This document shows, in pieces, positions 18,645 through 57,140 of a stretch of 64,000 nucleotides of DNA (the first letter of the stretch is position 1; every line of letters begins with the position of its first letter). The stretch is from Octopus sinensis (Eukaryota), in NCBI RefSeq assembly GCF_006345805.1, contig NC_042997.1, forward strand, positions 73,346,001 to 73,410,000, given 5' to 3'. The notes under the pieces are model-generated. The model did no database searches and had not been told where the DNA came from. It saw only the letters and a program-made list of their open reading frames with translations. Position numbers and translations under genes: made by a program.

Positions 18645-20247
18645 TCGCTTTTTTTTTGGTGTCGGAATTTTTTATTGCGTTATTGGTGTGTCGAGGTTGT
18701 GAGTTCGAGTTCGTTGGTGGAGGCCGTTGAGGCGTGGTGAATGTTTTTGGAGATGTTTCGAAAATGCAAGCCCAGACGTATGCGGAAGCAGCAGACAGAG
18801 GCTTGACTGCGAGTGATTTAGAGCTGGAAGAAGTGGTAGTCGAGAAAGAGACATTGGAAAAATATTTCGACGGCTTGAAGTAGGAAGATGATTGTGTGAG
18901 AGTCACACCGTCTGAAGAAGAAGCAAAAGAAGCGGAGAAACGTATGATAACATACAGAACGTGGAGCGTGGCTTCAAAGAAAATAGAAGTGGCAGAGACG
19001 GAGGAAATAGAGAAATGTCTGCAAACGAGGAAGAAAATACGCTACAGTGGTCGTCCATTTTAAAAATGAAGATGAAGCAAGAAGGAATGTCACGAAAATT
19101 CTGAAATCTGAAAGATGGACATTATTACCAAGTTACTGCGGAAAGAGTGCAGTAAGAATAAGAATCGGTAGGATTTCGCCGGAGCTTAACATGGAAAGGA
19201 TTCTAGCGGCAGTGGTTTTCAACTGCAAGGAAAGCATTGAGGTGTTGAAGGTGGAAAGGTCAACAGAAGTAAAGTGGTGGGGTTATGCGGTGCAGGCATT
19301 GGTCCACATTACTATGCCAGACCTCTATAACATCCCGGAGGAGTTGGTGTTCCCCGACGAGACACGTCTTAGAGTCGTGGTGGAGGAGAGACCCCCAGTG
19401 TGTTACAAATGCAAAATAAGAGGCCACATGAAGGATGTGTGTCCGCTGGGAGAAGTGCAGGAGAAAACGATAGCACTGGAGGCTTTAACGAAGGAGTGGA
19501 AAGATACGTGTGTAGAGGAGGAAATCATCACTACAGATAATGTGGAAAGTGGTGAAGAGTTGGAGAAAGAAAATAGAAAGAGAACGCGGGTGAAATCACC
19601 ACCCAAAGAACAAAAAGAGGAAGAAAAAGCGAAAAACAAGATTACTGACGAGAGGGAAGACCGAACGTGCGAAGGGAGTGATGCAGAAGCAAAAGCAAGT
19701 GAACCAACAAAATTAACTGGAGAGGAAGAATGGGACAGAAGAATGGAAGAGCAGTTGAAAGGTCTATAAGAGAGGAGGAAGACCCAAAGGAAAGAAACAC
19801 AGAGTGGTAATATTATATTTCAAGGACAAAAATACGGAAAAGATGTTGGCAGGTAGGAAAAGTTTAATTAGAGTAAAGTTGAACCCAGAAATATATGATG
19901 ACCAGTGGAAGGCGGTAATCGTGGAGAGAGAGACATTGGAGAAAATGAGAGATGATTATAGTGTATGTGAATGATTATATGTACGTTATGACACTTTGCC
20001 AGCTATTGTGGATCAGGAGAGGTTGATAGAATACCTGACAGATGAACGACCAGTATAGCAGAACTGTGTTTTAATGAAGCTGCGAGTTATGGGGGGCTCG
20101 TAAGCCGTTCCATCTAATCCATTATAAATATTCATTTCACTTCATATTTTTCAATTTTTTTTATTATATGTACCCCATGTCCTGATTGTGATGTCCCCTC
20201 TTAATTCGGGCCTTAGTGCCTATAATAAAGATAAATCCAATCGAAAA
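18645..20247 (+). mobile_element. ORF1-only Tx1-derived retroelement (HAL1-like), element X
   Basis: ATG at 18764 (MQAQTYAEAA), RGRKYATVVVHF, knuckle CYKCKIRGHMKDVC at 19401-19442, Glu/Lys linker, no APE or RT. 3' UTR with hairpins and AATAAA at 20224. Confidence 0.85.
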
Positions 20248-20415
20248 CCGGTGATTACCGTACGTTGACGAGAGGCAAAAACCTCGAAACTATAGCCTGT
20301 ATGTATCACTTAGGTTTTCGAGAGGGGATGACCTCCCTTTGCGAATATTAGAAGGCACAGAAAATTTGTCTAAAGCCAGCTGGAGACGATGATCTCCTGG
20401 GGCTAAAAGCTTCAG
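20248..20415 (-). pseudogene. Second copy of the unidentified coding fragment seen at 1422-1600
   Basis: Minus peptide LLAPGDHRLQLALDKFSVP versus LVAPGEHLLQLAIDTLSVP. Confidence 0.55.
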
Positions 20416-20799
20416 TAACACCCACCCCCAGTGGCTAGCCACATTGAGATGGCTAGTACACTTTATGTTATCATTGGATATGTTATACAAAATTCATATT
20501 TTATATCTCTAAAGAGCAGAAGCGTTGTCTATAAATGCTTATCGATATAGGATTTCATAATAGGGACAACTCATCTGTGAAACGATCGTAAGATGCTTTA
20601 AATATTTAATTCAAAACTTTTAAACTGTCATATACATTATATATTTATATTTATACATATTTACATATATTTTTTTACATATTTATATTTATTTATTTAT
20701 ATATTCTTAATACAACTATTTTGCCACGTTTATATCTTTCTGAGGAGTTTTGATATTGATTTCCTTTCCTAATGTTAATAATAGTATATTAAAAAATAT

Positions 20800-21540: not shown

Positions 21541-21653
21541 ATTTATATATTTAGTCGATGACTATTTTCTCTTTTTCACCAGGCCGCTGGTTGCGATAAA
21601 TTTCTATTGAATTTTTTGCTACCCTAAATTGACTATATATATATATATATATA

Positions 21654-23270
21654 CAGTTGCGGTCAAAATGTTCAGAACGGCATTGTTTTTGTCAGAAAAG
21701 TAGGTATAAGTTTTTATTAAAGTTGTCTCTTCAGAGACAATAAATACAATATTAATTGGTATTGTCTGAGATTTTGGTGTAATTTGAGTGGATAATACAA
21801 AAGTTATGGATGATATAGTGATTTACTGCAAAAACTATGGTGGCCAAAATGATCAGAACGATTGAAAAAATAACAAAATAATCAAAAAGTGACGGAGAAT
21901 GCTGGAATTATTTCATATTTAGTGTGAAGCCCTTTAGCTTCAATCAAAGTTTGATATTTTCGACTGCATGGGGAAATGAAATTTTCATTTTCTTGCTGGG
22001 TGACCTTATTCCATTCTTCCTGAAGGGCATTCCATAATTGCTCGGTTGTTTTAGGATTTCTGGCTTTCAAACGTTCTCCTAGAATATTCCACACATTTTC
22101 AATAGGATTGAGGTCTGGGCTTTGAGCAGGCCAATCCATAACAATAACCTTTTCAGCCTTGAGGAAGTTCATGACCACCTTAGCCTTGTGACATGGGGCA
22201 TTGTCCTGCATGAATATAGGTGGTCGCTTAGTTGAATTTCTCAGCACAGGCAAAACGTGATCTTTTACATGTTGTTTATAAACTCCTGCATTTACCTTTC
22301 CATGTAATCGCAGCAAAGGGCCCACAGCATCTCCAGATATCATCCCCCAAACCATGACACTTCCTCCACCGAATTTAAATCTAGTCTTAAGGCATTTAGG
22401 TGACAATATTTTACCTGCTTTTCGACGAACGTACCTTTTCCCATCTGAGCCAAATAACATAGACTTAGATTCATCACTGAAATGCACCGTTTGCAATTTT
22501 TCTTGAGACCACAACACATGTCCGGTTGCAAAGGTAAGACGACACTTTTTATTCTTGGAGCTGATCAGTGGCTTCACTGCAGGTGCTCTTGCTTGTAGGT
22601 CATGTTCAACTAAAGGACAAGACACAGTTTTTCGAGATACAGTTTTCTTCAGTACAATGCTCATTTCCCAAAAAACAGCAGCAGCAGTTTTAAATCTGTC
22701 CTTTTTAACCAACTTTACCATAGCACGATCTTCTCTCTTGGTCGTTTTTCTTGGCCTACCTGTAGACTTTCTTGCTTCACACGAACCACAATCATCGTAG
22801 ACCTTAAGAATACCGTGAACAACACTTTTTGACTTGTTAACAATCTTTGCAATAGACCTAATACTTAAATTATCCTTCTTTCGAAGCTTAATAATCTGTT
22901 GACGAATTGGTAACGGAGTAAGTGGCATTATATTAACAAAGTACACTGCAAATATTCTTACTAATGTTTAGTAAACGAACTGTCACGTAAACAAATTCAA
23001 AACATTAGAGTTCGACGGTTAAATATACTAAAACATGGAGTAAAAGCAACCGTTCTGATCATTTTGGCCGCCATGGGTTTTGCAGTAAATCACTAAATCA
23101 TCCATAACTTTTGTATTATCCTCTCAAATTACACCAAAATCTCAGTCAATAACACATAATATCGTATTTATTGTCTGTGAAAATGATAGAATATAAAACA
23201 GCTTTGATAAAAACTTATACCTACTTTTCTGACGAAAACAATGCCGTTCTGAACATTTTGGCCGCAACTG
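21654..23270 (-). mobile_element. Tc1-family DNA transposon with IR/DR-type long TIRs
   Basis: Begins CAGTTGCGG and ends CCGCAACTG, with TA on both sides. TIRs ~21654-21860 and ~23051-23270 each carry outer and inner copies of CAAAATG(T/A)TCAGAACG. Confidence 0.97.
21882..22928 (-). CDS. Tc1 transposase (DD34E), 348 aa open frame
   Basis: N-terminal HTH and GRPRK motif. FSDESK, MQDNAPCH and WPAQSPDLNPIENVW, with 34 residues between the second D and E. ATG at 22928. Some non-consensus residues suggest decay. Confidence 0.9.
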   Translation of the reverse strand: MPLTPLPIRQQIIKLRKKDNLSIRSIAKIVNKSKSVVHGILKVYDDCGSCEARKSTGRPRKTTKREDRAMVKLVKKDRFKTAAAVFWEMSIVLKKTVSRKTVSCPLVEHDLQARAPAVKPLISSKNKKCRLTFATGHVLWSQEKLQTVHFSDESKSMLFGSDGKRYVRRKAGKILSPKCLKTRFKFGGGSVMVWGMISGDAVGPLLRLHGKVNAGVYKQHVKDHVLPVLRNSTKRPPIFMQDNAPCHKAKVVMNFLKAEKVIVMDWPAQSPDLNPIENVWNILGERLKARNPKTTEQLWNALQEEWNKVTQQENENFISPCSRKYQTLIEAKGLHTKYEIIPAFSVTF

Positions 23271-23658
23271 TATATATATTTATATATATATATATATGAT
23301 CTGTGTGTAATTACCATAACAAATAACAGGGAGAATGTAATGTATTCCGAAAATCTATCGCCCAAAGTACAGTGCATTGATTTTTACTTATTAGAAAGAA
23401 GAGTGATGGAAGTTGTAAGTCAATCGTAATCGTGAGAGCACATGAAGCACATGAATCACAGAGATCGATGACGACATTTAATTTTAAAGCTTATTGTTTT
23501 TATCTTCGCTGCGAGAAGTGTGACGAATATAATCATATCATAAGACAAGTCAAGTGGACATAATTGATTGAACTTCTCACTTTTGTCACAAAATCATTAT
23601 GACATTAGAGAATTAAAAAAAAGTTTGTGCTCAGTGAAAAATGTTGCCATAGTTTGTG

Positions 23659-24165: not shown

Positions 24166-24238
24166 GCCGAAATAGCTCAGTTGGGAGAGCGTTAGACTGA
24201 AGATCTAAAGGTCCCTGGTTCAATCCCGGGTTTCGGCA
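24166..24238 (+). tRNA. trnF-GAA: tRNA-Phe (GAA)
   Basis: GCCGAAATAGCTCAGTTGGGAGAGCGTTAGACTGAAGATCTAAAGGTCCCTGGTTCAATCCCGGGTTTCGGCA. Full cloverleaf, anticodon at 24199-24201, canonical metazoan sequence. Confidence 0.98.
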
Positions 24239-25414: not shown

Positions 25415-28400
25415 CACACCCTTTAGCCTGGTAAGGCAGATTATATAGAGATGGAATCTCAATAAAAATACTCGTAGGAAGGAAAATTCCAGAAATCACT
25501 CTCAAGGAATCACGAAAAAAAAAACAATAATGAAATAGTTAACGGCGTGAAGGAAGCTGGAACCAGTTACGGCGAAGGTCTCACGCCCGGTATGGAAGTG
25601 ATTGGTTACGGATGATCTTTACAAAGCAACAGATCACATACAAAACCTGCGTGCAGCTAGACACAAGTGGACGAGTACGCTATACTCATACTCATTGAAT
25701 GTCATGAAAGAACAAAACTAGAAGGCAGTAGTGGAGGAGGACGACGTACATAATTTCAATGTCAGAAAATAAATTAATGAATCAAGTGAGCGTGATTAGG
25801 CCGAAGAATTAGTTAACTGAGGCAGAAATATTTCAGATTACTGAACGTTTAAGGGAAGCTGCAGGTGAGCAACAAAGGTTGATTAGAGTAGAAACTGAAG
25901 CTAAAGAATGTGAAGTTAAAGGCAGAGAGTAAAATAGACAACAGGAACACGGGAATTATAATAGGACTATTAAGGCTGCTGAGGAGAACTGTTACAAATT
26001 GAACTTTGTTACTGATGAGTTTGATTACAGAGAACAAGGACAATTATAGATTATTCACTTCAATTACAAAGAGGAGTAAATGAATGCTCCTGAAGAAAAT
26101 ATCCCGATAAGTATGTGAAGGGTTCATAGGGGCATGATGTATGTAATTGTCAAAAAGATAAATGCTGTTATATCACATATCCAGACAGCGGACATAACGC
26201 AACAAGGACGACGGCGGAGGCGGTGGCGGCGACAGTGGTGGCAGCGACGGCCACGGCGACGACGACAACGATAACGACGACGGTGACAACCATGACGACG
26301 AGGGTGACGACCATGACGACGAGGGTGACGACGACGACGATTACAAAACGCTTTTGACCTCATACCGCGTTCATGGATCCTGAAATCGCCGTTCATCTTC
26401 AAAATTTCATCCGTAATTACAAATTTTCTGAAGCAAAATATGTTATAGTGGAACACGAATCTCCAATTATATCACTCTAATGGAGTACTAGCTTCAAACA
26501 ATATTAGCATCAATTGGGGAATTTTCCAAGGTGATTGACTTTCGCCTTTAACATTTTTTCATAGCTTTAGTACCTCTTAGATGTGAATTTAACAGAACAG
26601 GGTATGGCCATAAGATTGAAAAAAAAAAAGCCTTAAAACTCTACGGCACAAAAAGTGATGAGTTTGAAGACTTGTTACATACTGTAAAAGCATTCAGTGA
26701 TAACATCGGAATGGAATTAGGTCTTGATAATTGTGCCAAGGCCACTTTCGAGAAAGGGAAATTGATAACACCAAATTCAGTCGTATTAAGTATTGAAACA
26801 GATACAAGAACTTGAGCAAGAACAAACCTATAAATACCTAGGTATAAAAGAAGGCCCTGACATTCAGCGAACGATTAGGAAGGAATGCTATAGAATATGA
26901 GTTCTGAAAACTAAGCTAAATGCATATAACAAGGCATTCGCCATAAATTCCTTAGTTGTTCCAGTTGTTACTTAAAGCTTCAATGTGTTGAATTGGAATA
27001 TCCGTAAAAGAAAATCGACGGAAAAAATCATAAGTTGCTGATTTGTAATAAAATATACGCCAAAAGACAGACGTGGATCTGATTTTACTTTCCCAGAGCT
27101 CTAGGATCTAGAAGCTTAATCTACAATTGGTCTGGCCACATATCTTGAAACACCTAAGACTGGATGTTAAAACTCGTTGAAAAGCACGGGAGGCGTAAGA
27201 AGCTTTATTCTATCTTGGAAGAGAGGAAATAATTTTCTATTGATTTCATGCTGAATATCCTGAAGGAAATGTGGCAGTTGTTGCTGCAAAGAAAGTAACA
27301 TAAATGGCAAAGGCAGTAAAATTAATTGGCTGGTAGGTTGGAGCAGAAATCTCTGCATGGAAAATATGTGACCCGTTGCAAGCATGCATATGTTGACCAG
27401 AAGCATCTTCATCAAAGGCTACGAAGCATGGGCTCAAGGTAAATAGAAAAGGTTTCATGTTAGCTGCTCAATATCAAAACTTCTTGACCCGGAACTACCA
27501 AGTCAACGTGATGAAAAATTGAATAGATCTAGAGTGCCGGTTCTGCAATGAGGAAATTGAAACAATGGAGCACCTAATCTTTGAATGTAAATTTTAATCG
27601 GTAGTAAAGTGTAAATCAAAACATGACACTGTTTGATATGCCAGCATCATAAAATCAAAATTGGTGACAAGTAGTATAAGCATGACTTTGAGACTGTAGC
27701 TGAGGGAGAAAATGGGATCTTTTCTAAAAGATGGACAGAATTTTCTACTTAACTAAATAATTTGAAACTTCGTATACTCTTAGAATGTGTCTGTTTTGAC
27801 CTCAATTCATTTTTTTCTGCCGTGTTATTCGTCCTTATCCATGTCTTCTGTCTTCAAAAGCTTCTCGCATGTTTATTTCAATGTCATCCCTGACTTACGG
27901 AACGATTACTTGTGTGTGTGTGTTTTTGTTGTGTATGTGTGTGCGTGTGTGTGTTTGTTGTGTGTGTGTTATTGTTGTGTATGTGTGTGTGTGTGTGTTT
28001 GTTGTGTGTGTGTGTTTGTTGTGTGTGTGTGTTATTGTCGTGTATGTGTGTGTGTGTGTTTGTTGTGTGTGTGTTATTGTTGTGTATGTGTGTGTGTGTT
28101 TGTTGTGTGTGTGTGTTATTGTTGTGTATGTGTGTGTGTATTTTTGTTGTGTATGTGTGCGTATGTGTGTGTCTTTTTGTTGTGTATGTGTGCGTGTGTT
28201 GTGTATCTCTTAAATCGAGGAATTTCGTCGCCCAATAAAAATATTAACGATATTTTTTGAAATTTGATATCATTAATATTTTTATTGGGCGACGAAATTC
28301 ATCGATTTAAGAGATACACAACACAGGCACACATGCACAACAAAAAAAAAACACACACACACACACACACATACACAACAAAAAGACACACACACATACG

Positions 28401-30129: not shown

Positions 30130-33100
30130 CTGATGCAATAGAGTATCGGGAAGAATTTGCACTCCTCAAACAACGAAAAATAACACACAACGTTGCGCGG
30201 ATTACAAAAGACCACGTACCCGAAAATTGAACCAAATTCTGATTGAAAAATCAGCTACTGGATCAAATCTTCCCAACACACAGGAGCTGGACGTACCCCA
30301 CAACCGGAATATTCCAACAGATGGCCATCCATGCTCGTCACCAAATAATCAAAAGAAAAAGAAGGTAAAATGGTCTAGGGAAGATAATAAAGAAGTTCTT
30401 GGGGCCTTCTACCATGCCATATATTTCCCCACAGATAAATCTAACACTGTACAAACAAACTTAAACTGGAGACAGAAACACCCTGAAGTAAGACCCTACA
30501 TAGACAGTAACAAACTTGCCAACGTCAGAAGAAAATTACTGACTGAAGTAGAGATTGATCAAGTTAGACAAGCAATATCGGATAAAATGAACGAAGCTGC
30601 AGCTAGAGAAGATAATACAGAGGAAATAATTATAGACCAGCCCAGGGCTGATAAAAACGAAGTAAGGATTGAAAGAGTTAGTATAAGTGATATGCAAAGT
30701 GAAATACTCCCTGAACCAATCATAAACACAAAGACAGATGAACATCAAATAGATAGAGAAAGTCACACAAATATTGACCCAACAGAACTACATGAGCTAA
30801 AAAATCAAATCATGATTAAATGGCTGAAAATTAAAGAAACCAGCAATTAAAATCCGCAACTCTAACCAAAACATGAAAATAATTGGTAAAATCCGGCTTG
30901 CACTTAAGGATATAATTTCAGCTAATGATGTTGATATCACAAATCACGACCACCTATACTATGCATCCGCGACAATCTCAACGATCCTATGTGGTGTAAA
31001 GATTAGAAAACGGCAACATTCCCACAAAAAGCCTTCTTGGCAAGAGCGTCTGCAACAACAAATTAAACGATTTAGATCTGACATTGAATATTAAGGCTCA
31101 CAAGACTACCAAACCTACAAAAACCCAAAAATTGCTGAAAAATACAATATGAAAACTATACTTGATATTGATGCCACCATAGAAACCATCAAACAAAAGG
31201 TATCTGCCAAAGCTGCCCGCATAGCGAGGTATGAAAAGCGTGTTAGATTTTTCAAGGACAACAACATGTTCAAAAATAACCCCAAGAATTTTTACAGGAA
31301 GATAGGAAAAACAGCGTTTACTGTAAATTATGTACCATCAAAAGAAGTGCAGGGATTTTGGAATAAAATTTGGGCAGAAGAGAAAAAACACAACGAAAAG
31401 GCCCCCTGTATTGACAGAATATCTACAGAACTGGACCCCTTAGAAGAGCAAAAGTGGGAGGGTGTCAAGGTAGAAGATCTGCTCTCAGGAGGTCAAGCAA
31501 ATGGAAGTCTCCAGGAAAGGATAAAATTCCTAACTTCTGGCTGAATGCCTTCCCAGAGAGCCATGAACTGCTAACAGAACTGTACAATGATGTTTTGCAA
31601 CACCCTAGTTGGATGCTTCCTTGGCTAGTTAATGGGTTAACATTCCTGCTTCCAAAAAGTGAAGAAACAAATGAACCAAAAAACTATAGACCCATAACCT
31701 GCTTAATAACTATGTACAAAACGCTAACATCTGTCCTGACGGAATATACTTATAGTTTTTTAACAGACAGCAGCATATTCCCTAATGAACAGAAAGGATG
31801 TAAACGTGGATCCTACGACTGTAAAGATCAACTACTCATCAATAAGATGATCTTAGAAGATTGTCACAAACGACACAAAAACTTATCAATAGCCTGGATA
31901 GACTATAAAAAGGCTTTTGATAGCCTACCACATAGCTGGATTAGGAAATGCCTTGGAAATGTATAAGATAGCACCTACTCTGCGAAACTTTTTGACTGTA
32001 AGTATGAGATCATGGAGAACCACACTAACTCTGAACAGTGACAATGAATCCCTAAATGTTGGTGATGTAAAAATTTCGTGTGGCATTTTCCAGGGTGACT
32101 CTCTGTCACCACTCTTCTTTTGTTTAGCCTTAATACCTCTCTCAAAACTGCTCAATGACGCGCAGTACGGGTATAAAATGTTTGATAAAAATATAAATCA
32201 TTATCATTTACATGGATGATTTAAAGCTCTTTGCAAAAAATGACCAACAACTCAAGGGCTTACTACCGATAGTCAAACAATTCAGTGACGACATCAGAAT
32301 GCAATTCGGACTCGATAAATGTGCAAAAGCTACCTTTATCAAAATGACAGAAACATCTAACGTTAACCTTGACCAGCAGAATGTCATAAAGGATTAGACC
32401 CAGCGGAGAGCTACGAGTACCTAGGAGTAATTGAAGGGAACGGAATAAGGCATTCAGAGATGAAGGAAAGGATCAGGAGAGAATGTTATCGAAGAGTGAG
32501 AGCAATACTCAAGACAGAGCTGAATGCAAGAAACAGGATCGAAGCGATCAATGCATTAGCCATACCAGTTGTGACTTACAGTTTCAATATCGTTAACTGG
32601 TCAATTACTGAAAAATGTCAGCTCGACAGAAAAATAAGAAAACTGTTGACAATGCATAGAATGCACCGCCCTAAGGCAGATACAGAACGACTTTATCTGT
32701 CAAGAAAAGAGGGAGGCCGTGGTCTTTTGAAACTGGCAATAACAATGAAGATTGCTACAATTGGCCTAGACACCGACCTGAAAAAGTCTGAGGACTGGTT
32801 GTTAAAACTTGTCTCAAAACATGAAAACAAGAAAGCATCATACTCAGTAACAAACCAGGCAAAGGAATATCTAAGTGAATTCTGAATACAACCAATTTCG
32901 GAATTAGAGATAGACATACAAGAAACAAGCAAAGAAAAAGCCAAGCGCATGAAAACCCGTGCCAAAACTGCTGCCTTAGATATTCTGAATAATAAATGGC
33001 AAGAAAAACCTCTCTATGGCAAATACCCAAAGAGAGCGAATAATGCAGATATTGACAAAGCCCTGACCCATCAATGGCTAATGGTCTCTGGCTTAAAATC

Positions 33101-33949
33101 TGAAACAGAAGGGGTTTATCATAGCAGCTCAAGATCAATGCCTACCAACAAAAAACTACCAGGCCAACATATTAAAGAACGGCAGTAGCCCAGCATGTCG
33201 TGTATGCCGACAACAAAATAAAACCATTGATCATGTTGTCTCCAAATGCAGTCTTCTAGCGCCTACAGAGTACCTCAGCAGGCATGATAGAGCTGCACAA
33301 TATGTTCACTGGGTAATTTGCAAAAACCTGGATTTGCCCCATGAAAAAAACTGGTGGGAACATAATCCACCTCCAATGCTTGAAAATGACCACATCTCAC
33401 TCCTCTGGAACTTCACCATTCAAACTGACAGAAAGATAGATGCAAATAGGCCAGGCATCATATTGAAAGACTTCAGACAAAGAACATGCCTCCTCATTGA
33501 TATGACTGTCTCAATCGATATAAACGTATCTGTCAAGACCTACCAAAAACTGGGCAAATATAAAGATCTTGAAATAGAAATCAGCAAAATGTGGAACCTG
33601 AAGACTAAAACAATACCTGTTGTCATAGGTGCCCTGGGAATGATAGCGAAAGGGACTGATTGCTACCTAACTCAGATACCAGGAAACCCCAAAATGGCAG
33701 AAATTCAAAAGATAGTGCTCATGGGAACTCCTCATATCCTACGCAAAATACTCTCTATGTAATCCCAAGGTTTAAAACAAACTTTTTTTTTAATGTATTA
33801 GACATTCACTAGCACAGCACCAAAAAACCCCCAAATATATGGCACACTAGGCATAACAACAACGTGAACTTCCAACCTGTTGTCTCTTGAGGTCTCTGGG
33901 TGAGACTTGGAGCCAACTTGTACAGACATAAAGCAAAAGTCAAACATAG
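30130..33949 (+). mobile_element. R4/Dong-type LINE family B copy 1, near full length, frameshifted
   Basis: N-terminal KWSREDNKEV (Myb-like). WKSPGKDKIPNFW, NYRPITCL, AWIDYKKAFDS and MDDLKLF (RT). RH..ANRPGI..DM..KYKDLEIE (PD-(D/E)xK endonuclease). Ends in (TAA)n. Confidence 0.92.
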
Positions 33950-33983
33950 AATAATAATAACAATAATAATAATAATAATAATA

Positions 33984-41269: not shown

Positions 41270-41271
<2 letters not shown>

Positions 41272-42528: not shown

Positions 42529-42530
<2 letters not shown>
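41270..42530 (+). mobile_element. R4/Dong family B copy 2, truncated with internal deletions
   Basis: Aligns to 31835-33949 with deletions, e.g. joins ~32815 to ~33365. Same 3' UTR ending GTCAAACAT(AAT)n. Confidence 0.9.
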
Positions 42531-42597
<67 letters not shown>

Positions 42598-43082
42598 TTA
42601 AAATCTGAAACATAGCAGCTCAAGATCAATGCCTACCAACAAGGAACTACCAGACCAACATATTAAAGAACGGCAGTAGACCAACATGTCGTGTATGTCA
42701 ACAACAAAATGAAACCATTGATCATGTTGACTCGAAGTGCTGTCTTCTAACGCCTACAGAGTATCTCAACAGGCATGATAGAGCTGCACAATATGTTCAC
42801 TGGGTAATTTGCAAAAACCTGCAAAAACTCCATGAAAAAAACTGGTGGGAACACAAACCACCTCCAGTGCTTGAAAATGACCACATCTCACTCCTCTGGA
42901 ACTTCACAATTCAACCTGACAGAAAGATAGATGCAAATAGGCTAGACATCATATTGAAAGACATCAGACAAAGAACATGCCTCCTCATTGATATGACTGT
43001 CTCAATCGATATTCCAAAACCTGAGCAAATATAAAGATCTTGAAATAGAAATCAGCAAAATGTGGAACCTGAAGACTAAAAC
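42598..43082 (+). mobile_element. R4/Dong family B copy 3, short internal/3' fragment
   Basis: Aligns to 33097-33610 and starts after a (TAA)n tract. Confidence 0.88.
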
Positions 43083-43385
43083 ATCTCTGATCATGAGCAG
43101 AAGTAGGGGAGGGAGCATCAGAGGTTTGGATAATTCACCTTTGGAAACATGGGTGGTTCGTTCCACATCCTTAAACAACCCTTATTCAGGGACCTTTTGA
43201 TCGGGATGGGCTACTCGACCAGAAGAAAATTCTAACTGGACTCCACCTGCAAGGTCATGCGCTGTTTATCCTGATATGAGATCACCATGTCGCGCACATA
43301 TGGTTGTGATGCATGTGTCTAGTGTACCCTTGTCAGACGGGTAGTCATGATGGGTATACTGGGCTTCGTATATTTTACCACAGTG
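43082..43385 (+). repeat. Partial second copy of the 40629-41182 element
   Basis: CATCTCTGATCA..AGAAGTAG through GGGCTTCGTATATTTTA matches 40825-41150. Confidence 0.85.
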
Positions 43386-47619: not shown

Positions 47620-47962
47620 ATGGGTAAGGATAAAGACCCCACTTCGGTCATGAATGACCATGGAATTGCACCAGAAAGTTACCCTGCGAGGTACAAATCA
47701 AGGCAAGGTTGTTTATGGAAGACTAGCAGTCGCCCATGTATACGAACCTCCCCTCTCCATGCCATCGATGTTACCCAACGGAAAAGCAAAGACTGATACA
47801 TCTTGGCACCAGTGACGTCGCAACTCATTTCTACAGCTGAGTGAACTGGAGCAACGTGAAATAAATAGTCTTGCTCAAGAACATAACACACAGCCCGGCC
47901 TGGAATCGGATTCTCTACCTCATGATTGTGAACCCGACACTCTAACCATTGAGCCATGCGCC
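47620..47962 (-). mobile_element. tRNA-headed SINE (second family)
   Basis: Minus head GGCGCATGGCTCAATGGTTAGAGTGTCGGG...AATCCGATTCC, followed by a conserved-domain-like TTGCTCCAGTTCACTCAGCTGTAGAAATG. Confidence 0.7.
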
Positions 47963-47964
47963 TT

Positions 47965-48265
47965 AGTGACCCTCATACTTTCTCTTCGTCTTTGCATTCT
48001 GTATTTCTCTTCTGTCCTCTTTTTCTTTCTCTCGTTGTCTTAGTTACTGCATCTGTCACTCTATATTTCCAAGGATATGCACATATATAGTTTTTTTTTT
48101 ATCTGTTGTTTCTGTCATCATCTTTACAGCCTCTCATAGAGAATTTTCATATATCTATCCATAAACAGAATTTCAAACATTTATCTTATTCTTCTCGGAA
48201 GGACATCTTCCGCAATCTCCTGAATTTCATTCCCTACATATGTATATGTTTTTTTATTGGTTATG

Positions 48266-48343: not shown

Positions 48344-49620
48344 TTTATGTATATATATATATATATATATAATGCAAGTCTAAGCCATATTTTGTTTCCT
48401 TTTTCTTCTTCCCTTTGTTTATATTGTATGCTCTTGTTTTCACTCTGCGTGTTTCGTCTGTGTGTCTGTTTTTAGGTTTCTGGGATTCTGAGCTACCTTG
48501 TATCTGTTTGTCTATATTTCTGTGCATTTGTATGTCCGTGTGTTTGAGTGACTGTGGGTCTGAATCTTTCAGTACTTGTAAATCCTTTACTAGTGATCCT
48601 ACTGGGGAATTATCCCCGTTTCTCGTCGTAGGTTGGGTTACCTCTTTCATTGCTTTGTAGTTATTCAGTTCCACTATCGTTGGTGACTTTCTTCTCTCTC
48701 TTTTTCTTGCTTTCACCTCCGCAAAATTCCCGTCTAGTTTTGTTATCTGTTTCTGCTGTTTCTCCACCATTATATTCTCCTGAATACTCTCCTCTACAAT
48801 TTCCACTGCTGCTCTAGGGCATTTCTTTCTCAAGTGCCCTCTTTCACCACATTTGTAACACTTTGAGGGGTCTCCCCTCCAACATTATCTCCAGTTTTTC
48901 TTTATTTGGTAGCTCTAAAGTTTCAGGTATTTCGTTGTAACATTTCGGGCTCACTGCACAAATTTTCTCTAATCCGTAGTCCCAGTACTTCACTTGTTGG
49001 GCTCGGCTTATCATGCCCATCTTCACGTCTTCGTTTTCCTTCCTTATCTCCGAATAATATATCGCCGCTTTTATCCACTCTGGGTCCATGGGGAGATTCT
49101 TCTCACCCCAATTCTTATAATTCGTTTATCCAAACAGTTTGTCATCAATGTCCATTTCCCTCCGTGTATCATCCTGTTGGAGGAGTTTTCCGCCTCCTCT
49201 TCTGATGGTTACCACTATAGACACATATCTATTTCCTCTCATAAAGAACGCTATGCCGTCTCCTATCAGTCTTTCCAAAATTTCTTCTATTTCTTCCTGC
49301 GGCGCTTTTTCACTTCTGTTTTTATTTGAAAATGTTCTGAATATTACCGTCTTCTTTTCCATTTTCGCTTTTTCCTCCTCTGGTAGGGTCAGTTTTATAT
49401 TTGACCCTTCTTTCTCAACCATACTACTATATTTTTCTATCATCTCACTTTTGCACTCTACCATCTCTAGTTTCAGCACATTTAGATCTAGGGGAACTCG
49501 ACCTCCAGTAGTTTCTGCATAAATTTTCATTTTTCTCAATTATTTACTACCGCCCAAGAATGGTGCCTTCGCACAAAAACTTCAGGTAGAGTTCTTCAAA
49601 AAACAACACAAAAAGTGGCT
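47965..49620 (-). mobile_element. ORF1-only Tx1-derived element Z2 (3' end not recognisable)
   Basis: ATG at 49530 (MKIYAETTG), RGNRYVSIVVT, knuckle CYKCGERGHLRKKC at 48819-48860, (CT)n(TA)n tract inside the linker. No APE or RT. Confidence 0.8.
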
Positions 49621-49624
49621 TGGT

Positions 49625-51322
49625 AGCTTGATTCTTTATTACAGGCACAAGGCCTAAATGCAGAAGGGACATACAAAGAGATGCGGGAACAAATATCACA
49701 TAAAGATGAATATATAATGAATAAAATACAATGCAAATGAGACGGCTATCTCGCTCCCGCTGCGAGATGAAACCGCAACTTCCCTTTTCGCTTTTGCCCA
49801 ACAATTACACACCTTTCAAACAAATGTTCATACAGGATTTACTTCTTATTTTTCCTTTTTTTTTACCTAAAGCCAACCTAATGTATATCACAAAATTTTT
49901 TTTAACCATTTTGAAAACCTGTTCATTCAACAATTTCAAAATTTGGTAGTTTTCCTTTTTTTTTTCCTTAACAGTTCAAATAAATATTTTCTCAGTTACA
50001 GTCTTTACAAAATATATATCGACTTACCTCTTCTGTCTCTCACAATGTATTTCACTTATTCAAACTTTTACGTTGGAGTGTCTTATCTCACTATAATTTT
50101 CCTTTTTCATTTTGTCTCTTTTTGTTCCTATTTTCCTGCTGTCTTGCATGTTCTTGCATTTTCGTCTCTAAGTCTGTGTGTTCGTGTATTTGTGTGTCTG
50201 TGTGTTCATTTGACTGCAACTCTACGTGTTTCGTCTGTATGTGTATGTTTTTAGGTTTCTGTAATTCTGGGTTGCTTTGTTTCTGGTCTGAATGATTCTG
50301 TACTTATAATTCCTTTGCTGGTACTTCCACTGGTAAATTTTCTCCGTTTCTCGTCGTGGTTTGGGTTTCTTCCTCCATTCCTTTAATCTCCTTCAAGTCC
50401 ACTGTCGTCGGTGACTTTATTCTCTGTCATTTCCTGGGTTGTACCTCCGCAAAATTCCCATTACATTCTATTTTTTGTTTCTGCTTTTTTTCCACCACTA
50501 TATCTTCCTGAGCATTCTATTCCACCATTTCCTCTGTTGCTCTAGGGCATTTCCTTCTCAGGTACCCTCTTTCACCACATCGGTAACATTTTGGGGCTAG
50601 TTTTTCACCGTTTGGTAATTCCAATGTTTCCGCCATTTCGTCGTAATATTTTCGGCTTACCGCACAGATTATTTTCATACCATAACCTCAACAATTCAAT
50701 TTTTGTGATCTACTTTCTATGCCAATCCTCAGGTCTTCATTCTTCCTCAGCTCTGAATTAAACGTTGCAGCTATTACCCATCCTGGGTCTATCGACCCTG
50801 ATTCTGACGATTCTTTTGCCCCAACAGTTCGGCATCAACGTCCATTTTACTCCCGTCAACATCATATTGCCTGATTTTTTCGCCTCCTCTTCTGAAAGAA
50901 AGGTTACTACTATAATTCCGTATCTTCTTCCTCTTGTAAAAAACGTTATCTTTTCTCCCGTGTTCACCACCAACATTTCCTCTATCTCTTCTGGCGGCGC
51001 GTGTTCGATTCTCCCAATTTTCATTTGAAAATGTTCTGAATGTTACCGTCTTGCTTTCCATTTTTCTTTTTTCCTCCTCTGGCAGGGTATTTTTATGTTT
51101 GACCCTACTTTCTTTTGATTCTCACAATATTTAATTATCTTCTTTTCATTCCACTCCATCTTCTCCAGCTTCAGCACACTTGGGTCTATAGCATCTCGAC
51201 CCCGGTAGCTTCCGCGTAACTCTTTATTTTTTTTTTATGTTTCCCAACCACCCAACAATGACGGCTTCGCAAAATCATTTGGCTAGACTCATTCCAAAAA
51301 ATAACAACAAAAGTGGCTGTCG
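49625..51322 (-). mobile_element. ORF1-only Tx1-derived element Z1, head-to-tail with Z2
   Basis: SYAEATG, RGRRYGIIVVTF, degenerate knuckle CYRCGERGYLRRKC at 50547-50588. 3' UTR with hairpins and AATAAA (49635-49640, minus). 5' end AGCCACTTTT shared with Z2. Confidence 0.83.
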
Positions 51323-52814
51323 TTGCCTATTCGCCTTTCAAAACATAGATTTCAAGTGAAATACATTCACTGGTTTCGAAAATAGAAATAAGACCCACCC
51401 CACCCCACCAAAAAGTCTAAACTAAGAGTATTAGTTTTTTTTTGTAAGAAAGCTAGCGAATGTGTACGGCAACAAAGACAAAAAACAGAGAACATGATAC
51501 ACAATTACAAATACAGCCAACAAAAAAATAACAACAGGTATCTTTGAACTGAGAACGAATCAAATTGAGCTGGCCTGTATGAAGTGAAATCCTAAAGGCA
51601 GAAACTCAGAAAATGGACATAAGAGGTGTTGGCGGTCGGCAGTCAGGCCAAGAAAGAAAGATCGTGGCTGGCCGAACACCGGTCACATGGAGAGAGGGCT
51701 AGGGGGAAGCAGGATTGAAGGATTAGAAAAAATCAAAGGGAAAAGTGCAGGGAAGATAAACGAGGGGGACAAGTGAGAGTTAGAGAATGAGAGGGCCAAA
51801 AAATGTGTGAGAGAGAGAGAGAGGGGGGAGCGAGAAAAAGAAAAGGGAAGAAAGTATGAGGGGGACTAAAAGATAGAGTAAGAGTTGTACAAAATTTAGA
51901 TACATACCTATATATAAACATACATAAATGTAAATGTTTTTCGCAAATAAATTGCGCATCATGCTTGAAGCTCCGATGAAGCTATAGTGTGATACACAAG
52001 CTCTCAACTGTGAGTGCGTTGCATCTTATAGCAGAAACAGCCGTAAGCTAATGAAGTTCATAACAGTTGTTTATTATCTTTGTCATCCCAGTTTCTAATT
52101 ACCGCTCTGTACTCGACTGATTCTTCGCATATGTCTATATTGGGAATCCTAAATGTTAAAATGTGTGTGTGTGAGAGAGAGAGTGGGGAGAGAAGCTTCA
52201 CACACTACTCAATATGCACCAGACCCTCTAGTTTATCATTTTCATAGAACTGTCTCCAGAAAATATTAAACTTACCCACATCAGTGTTTTTAATCTCAAA
52301 AGAGAACTAAAGAAAATGTTACCTTTTTTCTTTCTGTGTTTGGAGCCAACGTCTGTAGAGTAAGCTATGCGATGGAAGGTAATTTTGACTTTCATAATTT
52401 GCAAGCGTTTCCTTTTCTTCATCCGTATATATATGGGAGACGTCAGCTGGCTGGTAATCTCGGCCCTAAAAATAACACAGTCAGAACAGTAATTGATTGC
52501 ATACATTGCTACGCAACCACATAATTGTTAGGTAAGTGTATGGAAAATACATTTAACCGCAATAAATTTCAGGCACGTATTTTACCGATACGATAAACGA
52601 ATACTGTTGAATTTGAAACAGACCAATAAATAAATGAATGAAACTAAATACTGCAAATCTACCTTAAGTATATCGATTTTAACTGATGTAGTAACCGCCA
52701 ATACAAAATCACACTTTCATGAAAGGTGCATCGTATTTCGTATTCCATCATTAGTTTTGTATCAGTGTAATCCTCATTGTCGTTGTGAAATTCATAGTAT
52801 TGGTACTATATATA

Positions 52815-52847
<33 letters not shown>

Positions 52848-52848
<1 letters not shown>

Positions 52849-53340
52849 CTTTACATATATAAAACTGAGAATGTGTGTGTGTGTGTCTGTCTGTGTGTTT
52901 CCCTAAAACTTGAGAACTACACAACCAATTTCATTCAAATTTTACACATGCCTTGCTTAGGGTCCGGGGAGTGTCATCGGCAAACAAAATTTGAACTTTT
53001 TGCCTAGGGCGAGCCCACAGCAATATTATATCTTCTCCACTACGATTCCCTAAAACTCGAGAACTACACAACCAATTCCATTCAAATTTTACACATGCCG
53101 TACTTAGGGTCCATGTAGTTTCATGGGCAAAACAAATGTTCAACTTCTTGCCTAGAGCGAGCCCATAGCAATATCATATCTTCTCCACTATTTCAGTATT
53201 ACGTGATAAAAGTGAAACCAAAATATTTCTCTATTTTATGTCAGATACTTTCACTTTAACAATAAAAATAATAATAACAAATGAATTATATGTAGTAAGT
53301 AATAAAATCAAACTAAAGTATACTATAATCGTAATATAAC
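52848..53340 (+). mobile_element. Helitron-like repeat, 5' part with internal ~145 bp tandem duplication
   Basis: TC..TATATAAAACTGAGAATGTGTG 5' motif. CCCTAAAACT.GAGAACTACACAACCAATT unit at ~52901 and ~53048. Same family at 62872 and 63705. Confidence 0.7.
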
Positions 53341-53349
53341 AAAAGTAAA

Positions 53350-53530
53350 AATAGCAATTGGTATAAAATTGCATCAATTATTTGAACTTGAAAAAGTGGT
53401 TTCACATGAATGGGAATAAATTAAAAATAAAATTAGCGTGCAGAAATGGAATAGTCCAGATGGATAATAAAAAATTAAATTAAAGAAAATACTATTGTCT
53501 ATAAAGTATACAATGTAGAGAAAAAAGGTC
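53350..53530 (+). pseudogene. 5' half of an older ORF1, split by the Y array
   Basis: ELEKVV (53384-53401) and ENTIVYKVYNVEKK (53485-53526) match the N-terminal motifs ELEEVV and IIYKTYDTTKK of other ORF1s in the window. Confidence 0.5.
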
Positions 53531-55213
53531 GCGTTTTTTTGCGCTCTGTAAAATTCGGTTAAAAAAGAAAAACAACAAAAAGTGAATTGTGGTTGCGGAA
53601 TTGGAACGTCGGTTGGTGCGGTTTCGCGTCGCACTGGTTCTGTGCGTCGCACGTTTTCTGTTCGGGAGGCCGTTTTTCGGTCGGAGGCGACTATGAGCCG
53701 CCTCTACCAAACGGATGAGATGTAAGGGAGAAATTTCTCTGAAAATTCGTCGACATCTGAGGAGGAGTTGGCGGTGAAAAAAATGGAAAGCACCTATGCA
53801 GGTATAACGAAGAAGTCAACAGAAAAAGAGTTAGACCTGGCTAAGTTGACGGACTTCCAGGAGTTCATGAAGGAGGAGGAGAACGGAGAGGTTGAGCTGT
53901 TGCCTCTAGCAGGGCGCGGAGACTGGTTCCATCGTAGAACCATTAAATATAAAGTATTTATGAATGGAGGTAGAAAAATGGAAGTGATTAACATGGAAGC
54001 AATTGAAGAGGCTTTCAAACGGACAGGAGAAGAAATTGTGTACATGGCAAAAGGATTAGAATATGGAACCATAACGGTACAATTTAAAAGTGAGAAAGCA
54101 GCCAGGAATATAGCAGCCAAGGTGGTGAGTACACAAAAGTTTTACTTGTTCCCCTCGTATTTGAATAGAAGGCCCACCAGAATTAGGGTGGAAGGAATAC
54201 CTCCACACCTAGAGGGCGAATTAATAACGGCTGCGGTTATCAAAGGAAATGAAGATAAAGTGGACATCCTCCACGCCATTATGAAATATGAAGGCGTGAG
54301 TGGTGCCACACTAGTAATGAACATACAGACGGAGGCGGAAGTTATAGAAAAGCTTACGGACAGTATAAAAACTGGAATATTATTATGAGAGTGTGGGTGG
54401 AGGGTAGGGCGCCCAGGTGCTACAAGTGTGGCATGAGGGGTCACATAAGAGCCTACTGCCCTCCACCACTAAAGGAAAAAGAAAAGGAAATCGTCGCGGA
54501 AGCCCCAAAAGAGGAAGAAACCAAAGAGAACCAAAGGGAAAAAGAAACGACAGAAGAAGAGGAGATGCAACAAGAGTGGGAAGAAGAAGAAAAAAGAGAA
54601 AAAGAAAGAAAAAGAAAAACTGTGCGAAGCCCCAACCCACCCCAACACCACCCGCACCCTCTGAATCCCACCCTTCCCCTGCAGACAGTGAACCCACCCG
54701 CTCCCCTCCAACAAGAAAACAAAAGAAAAATAACAATACAGACAGACAAGAGTTTGAAAACGAACCCAGGCCGAACATTTATATTGTGACTGAACAGAAA
54801 GAGGTTGAAAGGGTAATGGAGGAGTATGAATGGTATGAAATGGATGGGACCAGATATGCAGTGCTGGAAAAGAAGAATATAGATGAGTTTGTGTTGAGGT
54901 GTGAAAGGGAGAATTGGGAGGTGAAAGATACAAGAATGAGCGATGAATTCGTGGAATATATGGAGGACAGTTTCGGAGTAAGAATGGATATGGATGGTCT
55001 TCGTATTGGGAATGAACATTCAGGTGACAGTGAAAACAAAAGGACAGGTAAGTGATGCTGGCGGAGGGGGCCGTTAGCATCGCTTTCATATTATCCTTTT
55101 TTCATTTTCATTTGCTCATAAATTTTATCATATTGTTCTATGTCCCCCATGTTTTGTTATGTCCGCCATTCTTCGTAGCCCCTGGTGGGTAATAAAGAAA
55201 TAACATGGAGGAA
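53531..55213 (+). mobile_element. ORF1-only Tx1-derived element Y1
   Basis: MESTYAGIT, GLEYGTITVQF, knuckle CYKCGMRGHIRAYC at 54418-54459, stop at 55055. No APE or RT. AATAAA at 55191, then AACATGGAGGAAA. Confidence 0.87.
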
Positions 55214-57140
55214 ATCTATCCACATGTGTTGAGTTATTTTGTATGCGAAAATTGGAAAAAAACTGTTAAAAATTGTCAAAAAGTTGAGTCGCGCGAGGCG
55301 TTTGCCGCTGCGTGTTTGAACCTTTTATAGAAGGTGTGTCGACCCTCAAGTCATGGAGACTTACGCGGGGGTCGCCACAACAAAAAGTGACGAGTCTCTT
55401 AGAATAAAAGAAGTGTTCTTTAGAAAAGAACAATTGAAGGAATACGAGAAGTTCGTCAAAAGGGAGGGTGACAGCGTGAAGCTGGTCCCGCCTGTGGAAA
55501 CAATAGAAGAGAAAAATAACAAGACGATAACGTATAGAACGCAAGATAGAAACACGAGAAAACTGGTGAGAGTGACGATTGAAGAAATAGAGAAATGTCT
55601 GGGGGACATCATGAAAAAAGCGACTTTTGTAGACAGAGGAAAGAAATATGGTACGGTGGAGGTGAGATGCGCAACAAAGGAAGTGGCCGCCTCATTGGCT
55701 TCCACTGTCCTGAAAGCGGAAAATTTCACCATGTGGCCGACGTATAAAGGAAGACGAGGGGTACGGGTAAGAGTCCCAAAGGTGCCCCCAGATATTAAAA
55801 CAGAAATGCTGGTAACAGCCATTATTGGGGCAGCAAAAGAGGAAGTAGAAATAGGGTCAATTAAGGAGACGAACGTTGTAAATTGGAAGGGATTCGGAGT
55901 AGAGTTGTGGCTGATGGCCACAATGGAAGACATCGAAAGATTTCCTTCCAAATAGAAATAGAAAACGAGAAAACAATTAGTGTAATAGTGGAAGGCAGAA
56001 AACCGAATTGCTACCTGTGCGGATCAAGAGGGCACATAAAAAAGGAATGTCCGATGTATGAATTCACAGCGGAGCAAAAAGAGACACAAAGTGGAGAGAA
56101 GGAAAACGAACACGAAGGAAAGAACAGCGAAAACAAGGAAAAGGAAATAACGGAGAAACAACAAGAGAAGGGAAGTAACAACGCACTGAAGGAAAATGAA
56201 AACAAAGGGAAGAAGATAGTAGAAAAGGAGCAAAATTCACAGGGTGCAGAAGTAGTGGAGAAGGAGCCAAGGCAGAAGCAAGAGAAAGAAAAGGAAAGTA
56301 CATTAAAGGAAAGAGAAAAAGCAGGAAAAGAACAAGAGAAGGAACAGAACCAAGAGAAAGGAAAAGATGGTATGCAAAAAGGAAAAGAAACAACAGGAAA
56401 GGAACTTAAGGCACAGGGTAGAGAGACGGCAGACAAAGAGCCAAAAAGACAAGAGAAGGAAAAAGAAAGAAGAGAAAGCAAAAAGAGAGAAAGAGAGAAA
56501 CCGAGGGAGGAGAAAGAAGAGGAAGTAAGTCCTAAGAGAAAAACTAGAGAAAACGTAGGTACGAATAGAAAATTCAAATACTATGGAACGTTGATCCATC
56601 ACAGGCACTGTGAGGAGATGGAAGATTTAATAAACGTAACAAACGGATATACGTGGGTCAGGATGGGCACCGAATGGAAAGAAACAGGTGCACTCGTCCA
56701 CGAGAACGACGCCGAGGCGTTCATCGAGGCAGCTGGCAAGAACGTGTCAAAACATATGAAATGCCGACTTACAAGGTGGCCTCGAACGATGGAAGTTACT
56801 CAGATTTGGTAGACATAATGGAGTATATATAAAAGAAAAGGTATTGTGAAAACTTTAATTTGGAAATGATAAAAAGAACTTTAAATTCTGAAAAAAAAAA
56901 AAAGAAATGTTGAACTTTGTAAAACTTTTGAAATGTATGTTGAAAATGTATAAAATGTTTTATTTGGAAAATATTGTTGACGAATAAAAAACAAATGACG
57001 AAATGTAACCGCTCGATTTCGGGGATCGAGTGGGCATTACACCACATTGTACAAACTTCATAATTCATTATTCATTTTCCCGATTGTATTGTCCCATCTA
57101 TGTAGCCCCTCGTGGGTAATAATAAAACAACATGGAGGAA
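55214..57140 (+). mobile_element. ORF1-only Tx1-derived element Y2
   Basis: ATG at 55353 (METYAGVAT), RGKKYGTVEVRC, knuckle CYLCGSRGHIKKEC at 56009-56050, long E/K linker, stop at 56812, one frameshift near 55950. AATAAA at 57121, then ACAACATGGAGGAAA. Confidence 0.88.

Follow-up and report, generated by a model that had tools for sequence, protein, structure and literature searches.

Head-to-tail stacks of ORF1-only L1/Tx1-type retrotransposons in octopus genomes, probably formed by repeated insertion at regenerated target sites

The DNA studied here is a 64,000-nt stretch of the Octopus sinensis genome (contig NC_042997.1, positions 73,346,001 to 73,410,000), which we call the window. It is eukaryotic DNA rich in transposable elements (TEs), and its close protein matches all come from Octopus. 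Three head-to-tail stacks of L1/Tx1-type elements, namely, W/X, Z2/Z1, and Y1/Y2/Y3, lie in it (Table 1). When the window was searched by tblastn with its own pieces of open reading frames (ORFs) 1 and 2, ORF1-like coding sequence was located in six places (X, Z1, Z2, Y1, Y2, and Y3), and sequence resembling the endonuclease (APE) and reverse transcriptase (RT) of this type of element was located only in V, W, and Y3. With these ORF2 pieces, X, Z1, Z2, Y1, and Y2 gave no APE or RT match. An original prediction, made from the sequence alone, had described these five as head-to-tail units of 1.6 to 1.9 kb that have an ORF1 and neither APE nor RT. The arrangement and the absence of APE and RT hold, and so does the length for X (1588 bp), Y1 (1674 bp), Y2 (1912 bp), and Z2 (1685 bp); Z1 is truncated, with at least 1273 bp left, as its 3' part was lost at a (TA)n(GA)n microsatellite at 48345. 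The claim that X, Z1, Y1, and Y2 end in a 3' untranslated region (3'UTR) with AATAAA likewise stands for X, Y1, Y2, and one Z unit (Z2, which runs from 51315 to 49631), and not for the Z unit cut by the microsatellite, so that four of the five ORF1-only units keep the terminal AATAAA. Both Z units lie on the minus strand, which corrects the earlier description, and they are separated by a spacer of 13 nt, CAAGCTACCAAGC (49630-49618). None of the units has a poly(A) tail; their ends fall a few bases past AATAAA.

Table 1. Features of the window and of the related loci (TSD, target-site duplication; see the text for the carrier and unit S)
Feature	Location	Strand	Coding sequence	Description
V	window 1..1410	+	ORF2-like 2-1170	3' part of an ORF2-bearing element, cut at the window edge
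D'	window 1422-1603	+		185-bp unit directly after V
W	window 14940..18633	+	ORF2-like 14951-18272	L1/Tx1-type, 5'-truncated, ORF2 only, several frameshifts; end ...GATCACTTGATCATAATAAAGATAAAT
tX	window 18634..18647	+		TSD copy CCAATCGAAAATCG separating W from X
X	window 18649..20236	+	ORF1 ATG 18765; tblastn-matched part about 18875-19770	ORF1-only, T-rich 5' leader, C-terminal domain, 3'UTR; end ...GGGCCTTAGTGCCTATAATAAAGATAAAT
tX and D	window 20237..20414	+		second tX copy CCAATCGAAAACCG (20237-20250), running into 185-bp unit D
Z1	window 48345..49617	-	ORF1-like about 49540-48345	ORF1-only, directly downstream of Z2
Z2	window 49631..51315	-	ORF1-like about 51200-50130	degraded ORF1-only unit, complete 3'UTR; end ...AGGCCTTGTGCCTGTAATAAAGAAT
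U	window 53046..53527	+		upstream flank of the Y stack, carrier sequence; end ...AGAGAAAAAAG
Y1	window 53528..55201	+	ORF1-like 53768-55052	ORF1-only, ORF1 stop within CAG|GTAAGTGA; end ...GTGGGTAATAAAGAAAT
t1	window 55202..55216	+		TSD copy AACATGGAGGAAATC, Y1/Y2 junction
Y2	window 55217..57128	+	ORF1-like 55353-56812	ORF1-only; end ...GTGGGTAATAATAAAAC
t1	window 57129..57143	+		TSD copy AACATGGAGGAAATC, Y2/Y3 junction
Y3	window 57144..62377	+	ORF1 57348-58730; ORF2 58738-62132	full-length L1/Tx1-type element
t1	window 62378..62392	+		TSD copy AACATGGAGGAAAGC, 3' of Y3
Downstream flank of Y stack	window 62393..62874	+		unit S (to about 62689), then carrier tail from ATTCCAGTCTG to hairpin and CTAG|T
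Carrier pieces	window 52807-53527, 62690-62874; L001 3679-4262; L004 6690-7330, 16230-16400; L003 18400-18604			
L001	O. vulgaris OX597814.1, 64.2 Mb			eight 1.78-kb Y2' units, then a Y3 copy
L002	O. vulgaris OX597815.1, 157 Mb			Y1-type (Y1''), then Y2-type (Y2''); unrelated target; without Y3
L003	O. vulgaris OX597820.1, 100.1 Mb			at least 7 Y2' units, then Y3, then window-type downstream flank
L004	O. vulgaris OX597820.1, 39.2 Mb			Y2, Y2, then Y3-type element (Y3*), in window-type carrier
L005	O. vulgaris OX597833.1, 33.0 Mb		intact 379-aa ORF1	solo Z-type unit, 1.74 kb
L006	O. bimaculoides CM046605.1, 72.5 Mb		without ORF2	three X-like ORF1 units head to tail, 1.7-1.9 kb spacing

The ORF1-only units share the layout known as type-I ORF1, with tandem RNA recognition motifs (RRMs), a CCHC knuckle, a charged linker, and a C-terminal domain. 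Pfam zf-CCHC was found in ORF1, and the three motifs named in the prediction are present (Y/F-A-E/G near the start, RGxxYGT, and CX2CX4HX4C), while identity between the families in the family alignment is only 31-35%, so that these proteins are indeed strongly diverged and still keep their motifs. An AlphaFold (AF2) model of an intact relative has a predicted local distance difference test score (pLDDT) of 73-87 over residues 30-220, and its best matches in the PDB are tandem-RRM proteins (E = 4e-5). All ORF1s of the window are interrupted, each by one to four or more frameshifts or stops: X has one stop and two frameshifts, Y1 has two frameshifts, Y2 has one or two (around 55950, within a run of A, and close to the C-terminus), Y3 has three frameshifts, and the Z units have three or more interruptions. 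Some of these frameshifts lie in homopolymer runs.

Copies of the ORF1-only families were found at six loci outside the window, which were reached via annotated octopus ORF1 proteins. A profile search of 1.8 billion representative proteins gave 1748 relatives at E <= 1e-3, and the named ones are all octopod (O. vulgaris, O. sinensis, O. bimaculoides, and Argonauta hians). An alignment-based word search for relatives of X, Y1, and Z returned Y3-type proteins only; the Z and X loci were subsequently reached by exhaustive profile search. At least 19 further Y2-type copies with an identical ORF1-to-3'UTR layout are present at four O. vulgaris loci, among them the Y2' units, which share about 71% nucleotide identity with Y2. 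Y1 has a second copy with an identical ORF1-to-3'UTR junction at an unrelated site (L002). The solo Z unit of L005, whose 3'UTR matches that of Z2, is bounded on either side by a perfect 11-bp TSD, TGCTGGGTTCG, and X-like units recur in O. bimaculoides. Because copies of the same layout exist outside the window, the alternative that each unit is a single-copy deletion is excluded for all four families. The 15 Y2' units, which form arrays on two chromosomes and are 95-99.8% identical, sort into three subfamilies (A, B, and C). Their ORF1 is intact (467 aa) in one unit, and in five more the sole break is a C6/C7 homopolymer about 175 nt past the ORF1 ATG. This run shifts the frame in 11 of the 15 units in a pattern that departs from the unit phylogeny, and its variation could be due to a polymerase slippage hot spot or to assembly error.

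Purifying selection on ORF1, as estimated by the NG86 method from consensus-based and pairwise comparisons, is seen in the Y families. The Y2' subfamily consensuses gave dN/dS values of 0.16-0.41, with 32.5 synonymous differences over 275 sites and 28.5 non-synonymous differences over 1114 sites between subfamilies A and B (Fisher p = 3e-9). For Y2 versus Y2', dN/dS was 0.15 at a dS of 1.2-1.9. Y1 and Y1'' differ with a pN of 0.26 and a pS of 0.78 (saturated) over the N-terminal two-thirds of ORF1, whereas pS is only 0.13 over the C-terminal domain and 3'UTR (window 54774-55201 versus L002 9890-10263); this mosaic indicates that 3' modules appear to have been exchanged between lineages. Y2, Y2', and Y2'' have a common ORF1-to-3'UTR layout that includes a Y2-specific hairpin block in the upstream part of the 3'UTR, so the ORF1-only organization is older than their divergence. 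With the copies outside the window and dN/dS values below 1, the units are, as the original prediction had proposed, ORF1-only families comparable to the mammalian HAL1 elements rather than one-off deletions with unique junctions and a neutrally evolving ORF1.

A point absent from that proposal is the place of the full-length partner. A Y3-type element closes the 3' end of all four Y arrays (window, L001, L003, and L004). The last ~50 nt are nearly the same in Y1, Y2, Y2', Y2'', and Y3, and the 3' end of Y3 is near-identical to that of Y2; the upstream hairpin block, kept in Y2, Y2', and Y2'', is lacking in Y3. The shared last ~50 nt and the place of Y3 in all four Y arrays point to a putative supply of ORF2 in trans by a Y3-type element. 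In every family a 4-bp hairpin can be drawn directly before AATAAA, with stems of three kinds (GCCC/GGGT, RGGC/GCCT, and GATC/GATC); these differences give weak covariation support for the short stem. Judged from sequence, the shared 3' end and the hairpin would fit "stringent" recognition of the 3' end by the ORF2 protein (ORF2p) of a partner. Premature polyadenylation was considered as the source of the ORF1-only units and rejected, as their 3' ends correspond to the true Y3 3' end, beyond ORF2. A 5' splice-site consensus (AAG|GTAAGT or CAG|GTAAGT) lies over the ORF1 stop in Y3 (58726-58740), in Y1 (55046-55056), and in the Y1 copy of L002 (10110-10120). In Y3 it immediately precedes the ORF2 ATG, and the L002 site is the splice donor in gene model P0002 of the O. 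vulgaris annotation. It may serve in the splicing-out of ORF2 or in the binding of U1.

In Y3, ORF1 precedes ORF2 on the same strand. The Y3 ORF2 encodes APE, RT, and a zinc-binding domain (Pfam Exo_endo_phos, RVT_1, and zf-RVT), has one frameshift, and matches human L1 ORF2p end to end (residues 3-723 versus 7-742, E = 1.7e-57). W is without ORF1 owing to its 5' truncation. By an ORF2 that combines APE, RT, and a C-terminal zinc-binding domain, Y3, W, and V are assigned to the L1 superfamily (L1/Tx1) of long interspersed nuclear elements (LINEs). The homologue search with ORF2 gave no clade-informative names, as the named relatives are just "hypothetical protein." Membership in the Tx1 clade is plausible: type-I ORF1 is typical of Tx1-like elements (PMC5203782), and both the Pfam zf-CCHC match and the tandem-RRM matches of the AF2 model agree with this type; insertion sites are used repeatedly; and, of L1-like groups, L1-Tx1 alone has been listed for O. 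vulgaris (PMC13282606). As to the sites themselves, one site in a carrier repeat was used in the window, L001, L003, and L004, V and W/X share a target, and the targets of L002 and L005 are unrelated. This looks like strong re-use of occupied sites rather than a single fixed recognition sequence.

The junctions between the units carry the main evidence for how the stacks were built, and this too is a point that the original prediction, which proposed a search for TSDs, did not contain. The sequence right after the conserved end of the units (...TAATAAAGAAAT or ...AATAAAAC) is specific to each locus and equals the local flank. It is CA(C/A)CATGGAGGAAAKC (t1) in the window, L001, and L003, TTCCAGTCT(G) in L004, CAGAAACGTCAGCACGCCG in L002, and CCAATCGAAAAYCG in W/X. 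These copies are 9-19 nt long, and a stack of n units has n + 1 of them. Because they are locus-specific, match the flank, and number n + 1, we regard them as target-site duplications that were regenerated and re-used, and we read a TSD copy at each junction as a sign of repeated target-primed insertion at one regenerated site, not of DNA duplication. Different families share such a site, as Y1, Y2, and Y3 do in the window. For the V/W/X group, the presumed target is unit D, which is 72% identical to D'; V, directly followed by D', serves as an X-free version of the W/X site. The idea that the 15 nt after AATAAAAC are the element's own 3' terminus was dropped, since the corresponding ends in L002 and L004 differ and match their local flanks.

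Y2' units are 98.5-99% identical across chromosomes and up to 5% different within one array. In L003 the junction nucleotides vary among units between two flanks that are invariant, and in L001 the eight junctions are nearly uniform, which suggests that unequal exchange also contributes. Junction variants pass outward from the Y3-proximal junction, and the copy beside the downstream flank keeps the ancestral form. The simplest account of this inheritance is that Y3 went in first and that units were then added at the upstream edge; the direction of growth is read solely from these junction variants. Unit identity was considered as an age gradient along the arrays and dropped: the Y3 copies of L001 and L003 are 99.1% identical, so both arrays are young and identity cannot be used as a clock.

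We consider it likely that the stacks consist of ORF1-only families of L1/Tx1 type that accumulated by serial, target-primed insertion at the same site with an ORF2 borrowed from relatives. Most members of the three stacks, which belong to the retrotransposons that lack long terminal repeats (non-LTR), would be non-autonomous, each consisting of a short 5'UTR, a type-I ORF1, and a 3'UTR that ends in a short hairpin plus AATAAA. Several old and diverged families (X, Z, Y1, and Y2/Y2') would amplify via target-primed reverse transcription, leaving TSDs of 9-19 bp. ORF1 is presumably kept under selection because each element needs its own RNA-coating protein in cis, and the endonuclease and RT may be borrowed from full-length relatives such as Y3, with the 3' hairpin possibly recognized during mobilization in trans. 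Each insertion would restore the cleaved target as a TSD, which could be recut so that the next copy lands exactly adjacent. New copies would most probably join at the upstream edge of the stack, and local unequal exchange may add further ones.

Several observations weigh against this account. ORF1 is interrupted in every unit of the window and in 14 of the 15 Y2' units. At least one ORF is broken in each Y3 copy examined, so the account presupposes a functional ORF2 donor. The terminal hairpin of X is like that of Z and unlike that of its neighbor W, and the pairing of donor and parasite is thus not one-to-one. The constant 3'-most, and hence first, place of Y3 is left unexplained, and the near-uniform L001 junctions fit DNA-level unequal exchange for part of that array. 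Finally, loci reached via annotated proteins are a biased sample, which may have missed full-length elements whose ORF1 is of the Y2, Y1, Z, or X type.

The alternative that survives best, although we consider it unlikely, is that the ORF1-only copies are recurrent by-products of full-length elements, made from spliced or internally deleted transcripts, so that the constraint on ORF1 comes from the parents and there is no long-lived ORF1-only lineage. The perfect splice-site consensus AAG|GTAAGT at the ORF1 stop and ORF2 start of Y3 would suit such an origin, and there are precedents in HAL1, which arose several times independently (PMC5753468), and in the repeated loss of ORF2 by fly telomeric elements (PMC13534243). 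Against this, Y2, Y2', and Y2'' are separated by dS values above 1 and yet have one layout, including the 3'UTR block absent from Y3. All three Y2' subfamilies (A, B, and C) are ORF1-only, and it is between them that the dN/dS values of 0.16-0.41 were obtained. Moreover, the GTAAGT is unspliced in Y1, and the ORF1 of Y3, the sole full-length element seen adjoining the units, is only about 33% identical to theirs.

Very unlikely, in our view, is the possibility that the arrays are tandem duplications of DNA, by unequal crossing-over or replication slippage, of one ORF2-deleted derivative whose units never moved as ORF1-only RNA. The almost identical junctions of L001 speak for it, as does the fact that neighbors are often the most alike (units 5 to 7 of L001 are 99.2-99.8% identical), and satellite-like expansion is known to start from double insertions (PMC5932611). 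Duplication of one derivative does not account for a solo Z with its perfect TSD, for the Y1-Y2 pair of L002, whose target is unrelated and which has a TSD triplet of its own, or for three different families at one site in the window. Units 1 to 3 of L001 are also nearer to the L003 units on another chromosome than to units 5 to 8 of their own array, and the L003 junctions are hypervariable between invariant flanks.

Still less probable is a concatemer formed in one event, in which the RT of Y3 copies Y3 RNA and then jumps end to end onto the 3' ends of ORF1-only RNAs. This would place Y3 always at the 3'-most position, leave no poly(A) between units, and explain extra or variable nucleotides at the junctions, and end-to-end jumping has been documented for the R2 RT according to a reference cited in PMC4494074. 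Jumping would not, however, recreate the copy of the local target that is present at each internal junction. A single array mixes subfamilies that are 2-5% apart, and the L002 stack and the Z pair have no full-length member.

That the ORF1 units are domesticated host genes (as L1TD1 is) in a tandem gene family is barely credible: ORF1 is under purifying selection and several units are annotated as protein-coding in octopus assemblies, but nearly all copies carry frameshifts or stops, the units have TSDs and LINE-type 5' and 3' ends, are inserted within other repeats, and show high turnover between loci, and the gene models P0002, P0003, and P0004 are chimeric across adjoining repeats. In the O. 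vulgaris annotation, these three models and P0008, all built on such ORF1s, are chimeras spliced across neighboring repeats, and one chimeric model carries the name "EPM2A-interacting 1-like." P0002, P0003, P0004, and P0008 are TE ORF1s, not host genes.

The carrier that holds the Y stacks is a repeat in its own right. Flank U and the flank of the L001 Y2' array are the same carrier (93.6% identity), which also flanks L004, and its upstream part ends at ...AGAGAAAAAAG in the window, L001, and L004. At the right end of the carrier a GC-rich hairpin, GACCCGGCAACGACGGGTC, lies about 7 nt before CTAG, which is followed by T in three loci; from its sequence this looks like the 3' end of a Helitron. 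The Y stacks in the carrier would then be an octopus counterpart of Tx1L, which inserts into the DNA transposon Tx1D. Between the Y stack and the carrier tail lies unit S (ACCTTCGGAAAG...GGGCTAACA), of roughly 300 bp (window 62393-62689, L003 18125-18400). The downstream flank of the window that starts with it is also found in L003 (91%), and unit S is missing from the carrier of L004, which holds just its last 10 nt. From its appearance, unit S would be a further retroposed insert in this carrier site, and its 5' edge is the target of the window-type stacks.

Some Tx1 elements target small nuclear RNA (snRNA) or tRNA genes, and the sequences that follow the elements were considered as small-RNA genes and rejected: Rfam, applied to the whole window and to the sequences after X and Y3, reported only an unrelated tRNA at 24166, and unit D (20237-20414 and 1422-1603) had no Rfam match even at E = 1. 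The target of L002 has a motif like that of a short interspersed nuclear element (SINE), which was not found in the window or at the other loci.

Other repeats lie near the stacks. Just upstream of the truncated 5' end of W, 14633-14934 is 91% identical to L005 8490-8791, which lies about 1.1 kb upstream of the solo Z; this segment is the 3' end of another repeat, and a Penelope/GIY-YIG-type element is suggested by the ORFs at 13982-14810. An unrelated LINE family is represented at 26345-27714 and 30227-43385 by several copies and fragments, with (AAT)n tails and nested copies among them; one has an intact 1052-aa ORF (34317-37475) with RT and a conserved C-terminal domain (...IDMSIPCDHNI...VIVGALGMI). 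There is also a 354-aa ORF for a Tc1/mariner-type transposase on the minus strand (21882-22946), flanked by terminal inverted repeats (21634-21864 and 23047-23290; 87% identity). At 24166-24238 lies a tRNA gene or the tRNA-derived head of a SINE, and a SINE resembling tRNA is on the minus strand at about 47700-47980.

ORF1-only LINEs are well documented in two settings only, mammalian HAL1 and the telomeric Jockey elements of flies, and the fly case has been called striking since loss of ORF2 seemed confined to the telomere niche (PMC13534243). A mollusc would add a third, independent case, in the L1/Tx1 group, at interstitial sites, with several old families and measurable selection on ORF1. 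It supports the ideas that ORF1 protein (ORF1p) has to be provided in cis whereas ORF2p can come from another element, and that a shared insertion niche favors such cheaters. In the literature that could be searched, which did not extend to Repbase and Dfam, we found neither ORF1-only Tx1-like elements nor stacks of this kind described. On the practical side, units that are annotated as octopus protein-coding genes, some in chimeric models, inflate gene counts.

Compared with known systems, the octopus units resemble HAL1 in being non-autonomous derivatives of an L1-superfamily LINE that encode only ORF1p and would need ORF2p in trans; HAL1, too, arose more than once (PMC5753468). HAL1, however, has a type-II ORF1 (Transposase_22), is dispersed and poly(A)-tailed, and is not known to stack at the same site, whereas the octopus units have a type-I ORF1 (RRM and CCHC), end in a hairpin and AATAAA without poly(A), and occur mostly in head-to-tail stacks. 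Tx1-clade LINEs and the SINEU-3 elements that they mobilize prefer a target site inside another transposon, to which the repeated use of the carrier site by the octopus stacks may correspond, and share with these stacks tandem insertion around a TSD; tandem SINEU-3 copies that sandwich a TSD were explained as sequential insertions (PMC4494074). SINEU-3, a SINE whose head derives from snRNA, is non-coding, whereas the octopus passengers are 1.6-1.9 kb long with a selected ORF1, and their stacks reach at least nine members. In Drosophila, R1 and other site-preferring TEs likewise form head-to-tail dimers by repeat insertion at a preferred site, and these can expand by unequal exchange (PMC5932611). 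Such dimers consist of copies of a single, mostly autonomous family, unlike the several diverged non-autonomous families plus a full-length element found per site in octopus.

By analogy, the HeT-A/TART/TAHRE arrays of Drosophila appear to be at least as close a counterpart as HAL1, a comparison that the original prediction did not make. There, too, ORF1-only (Gag-only) elements and ORF2-bearing relatives are mixed head to tail in the same niche, and the fly ORF1-only lineages are long-lived and can spawn new ones (PMC13534243). The fly elements belong to the Jockey clade and attach to chromosome ends without TSDs, whereas the octopus stacks have interstitial positions, at 39-157 Mb on chromosomes that measure 128-226 Mb, and a TSD copy at their junctions. 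The possibility that the octopus stacks are themselves telomeric was considered and rejected, as tens of Mb separate the loci from the chromosome ends, TSD copies are present, and no TTAGGG/CCCTAA repeats occur in the window. More tentatively, octopods may harbor a guild of ancient ORF1-only L1/Tx1 lineages that prefer the upstream edge of a resident full-length element, with interstitial arrays that have come by convergence to be built like Drosophila telomeres. On this reading, a LINE niche that is shared and regenerates itself would generally lead to elements that drop ORF2 and keep ORF1, not only at telomeres, and the drifting TSD copies of the octopus stacks, for which the fly arrays have no equivalent, would record the order in which each array grew.

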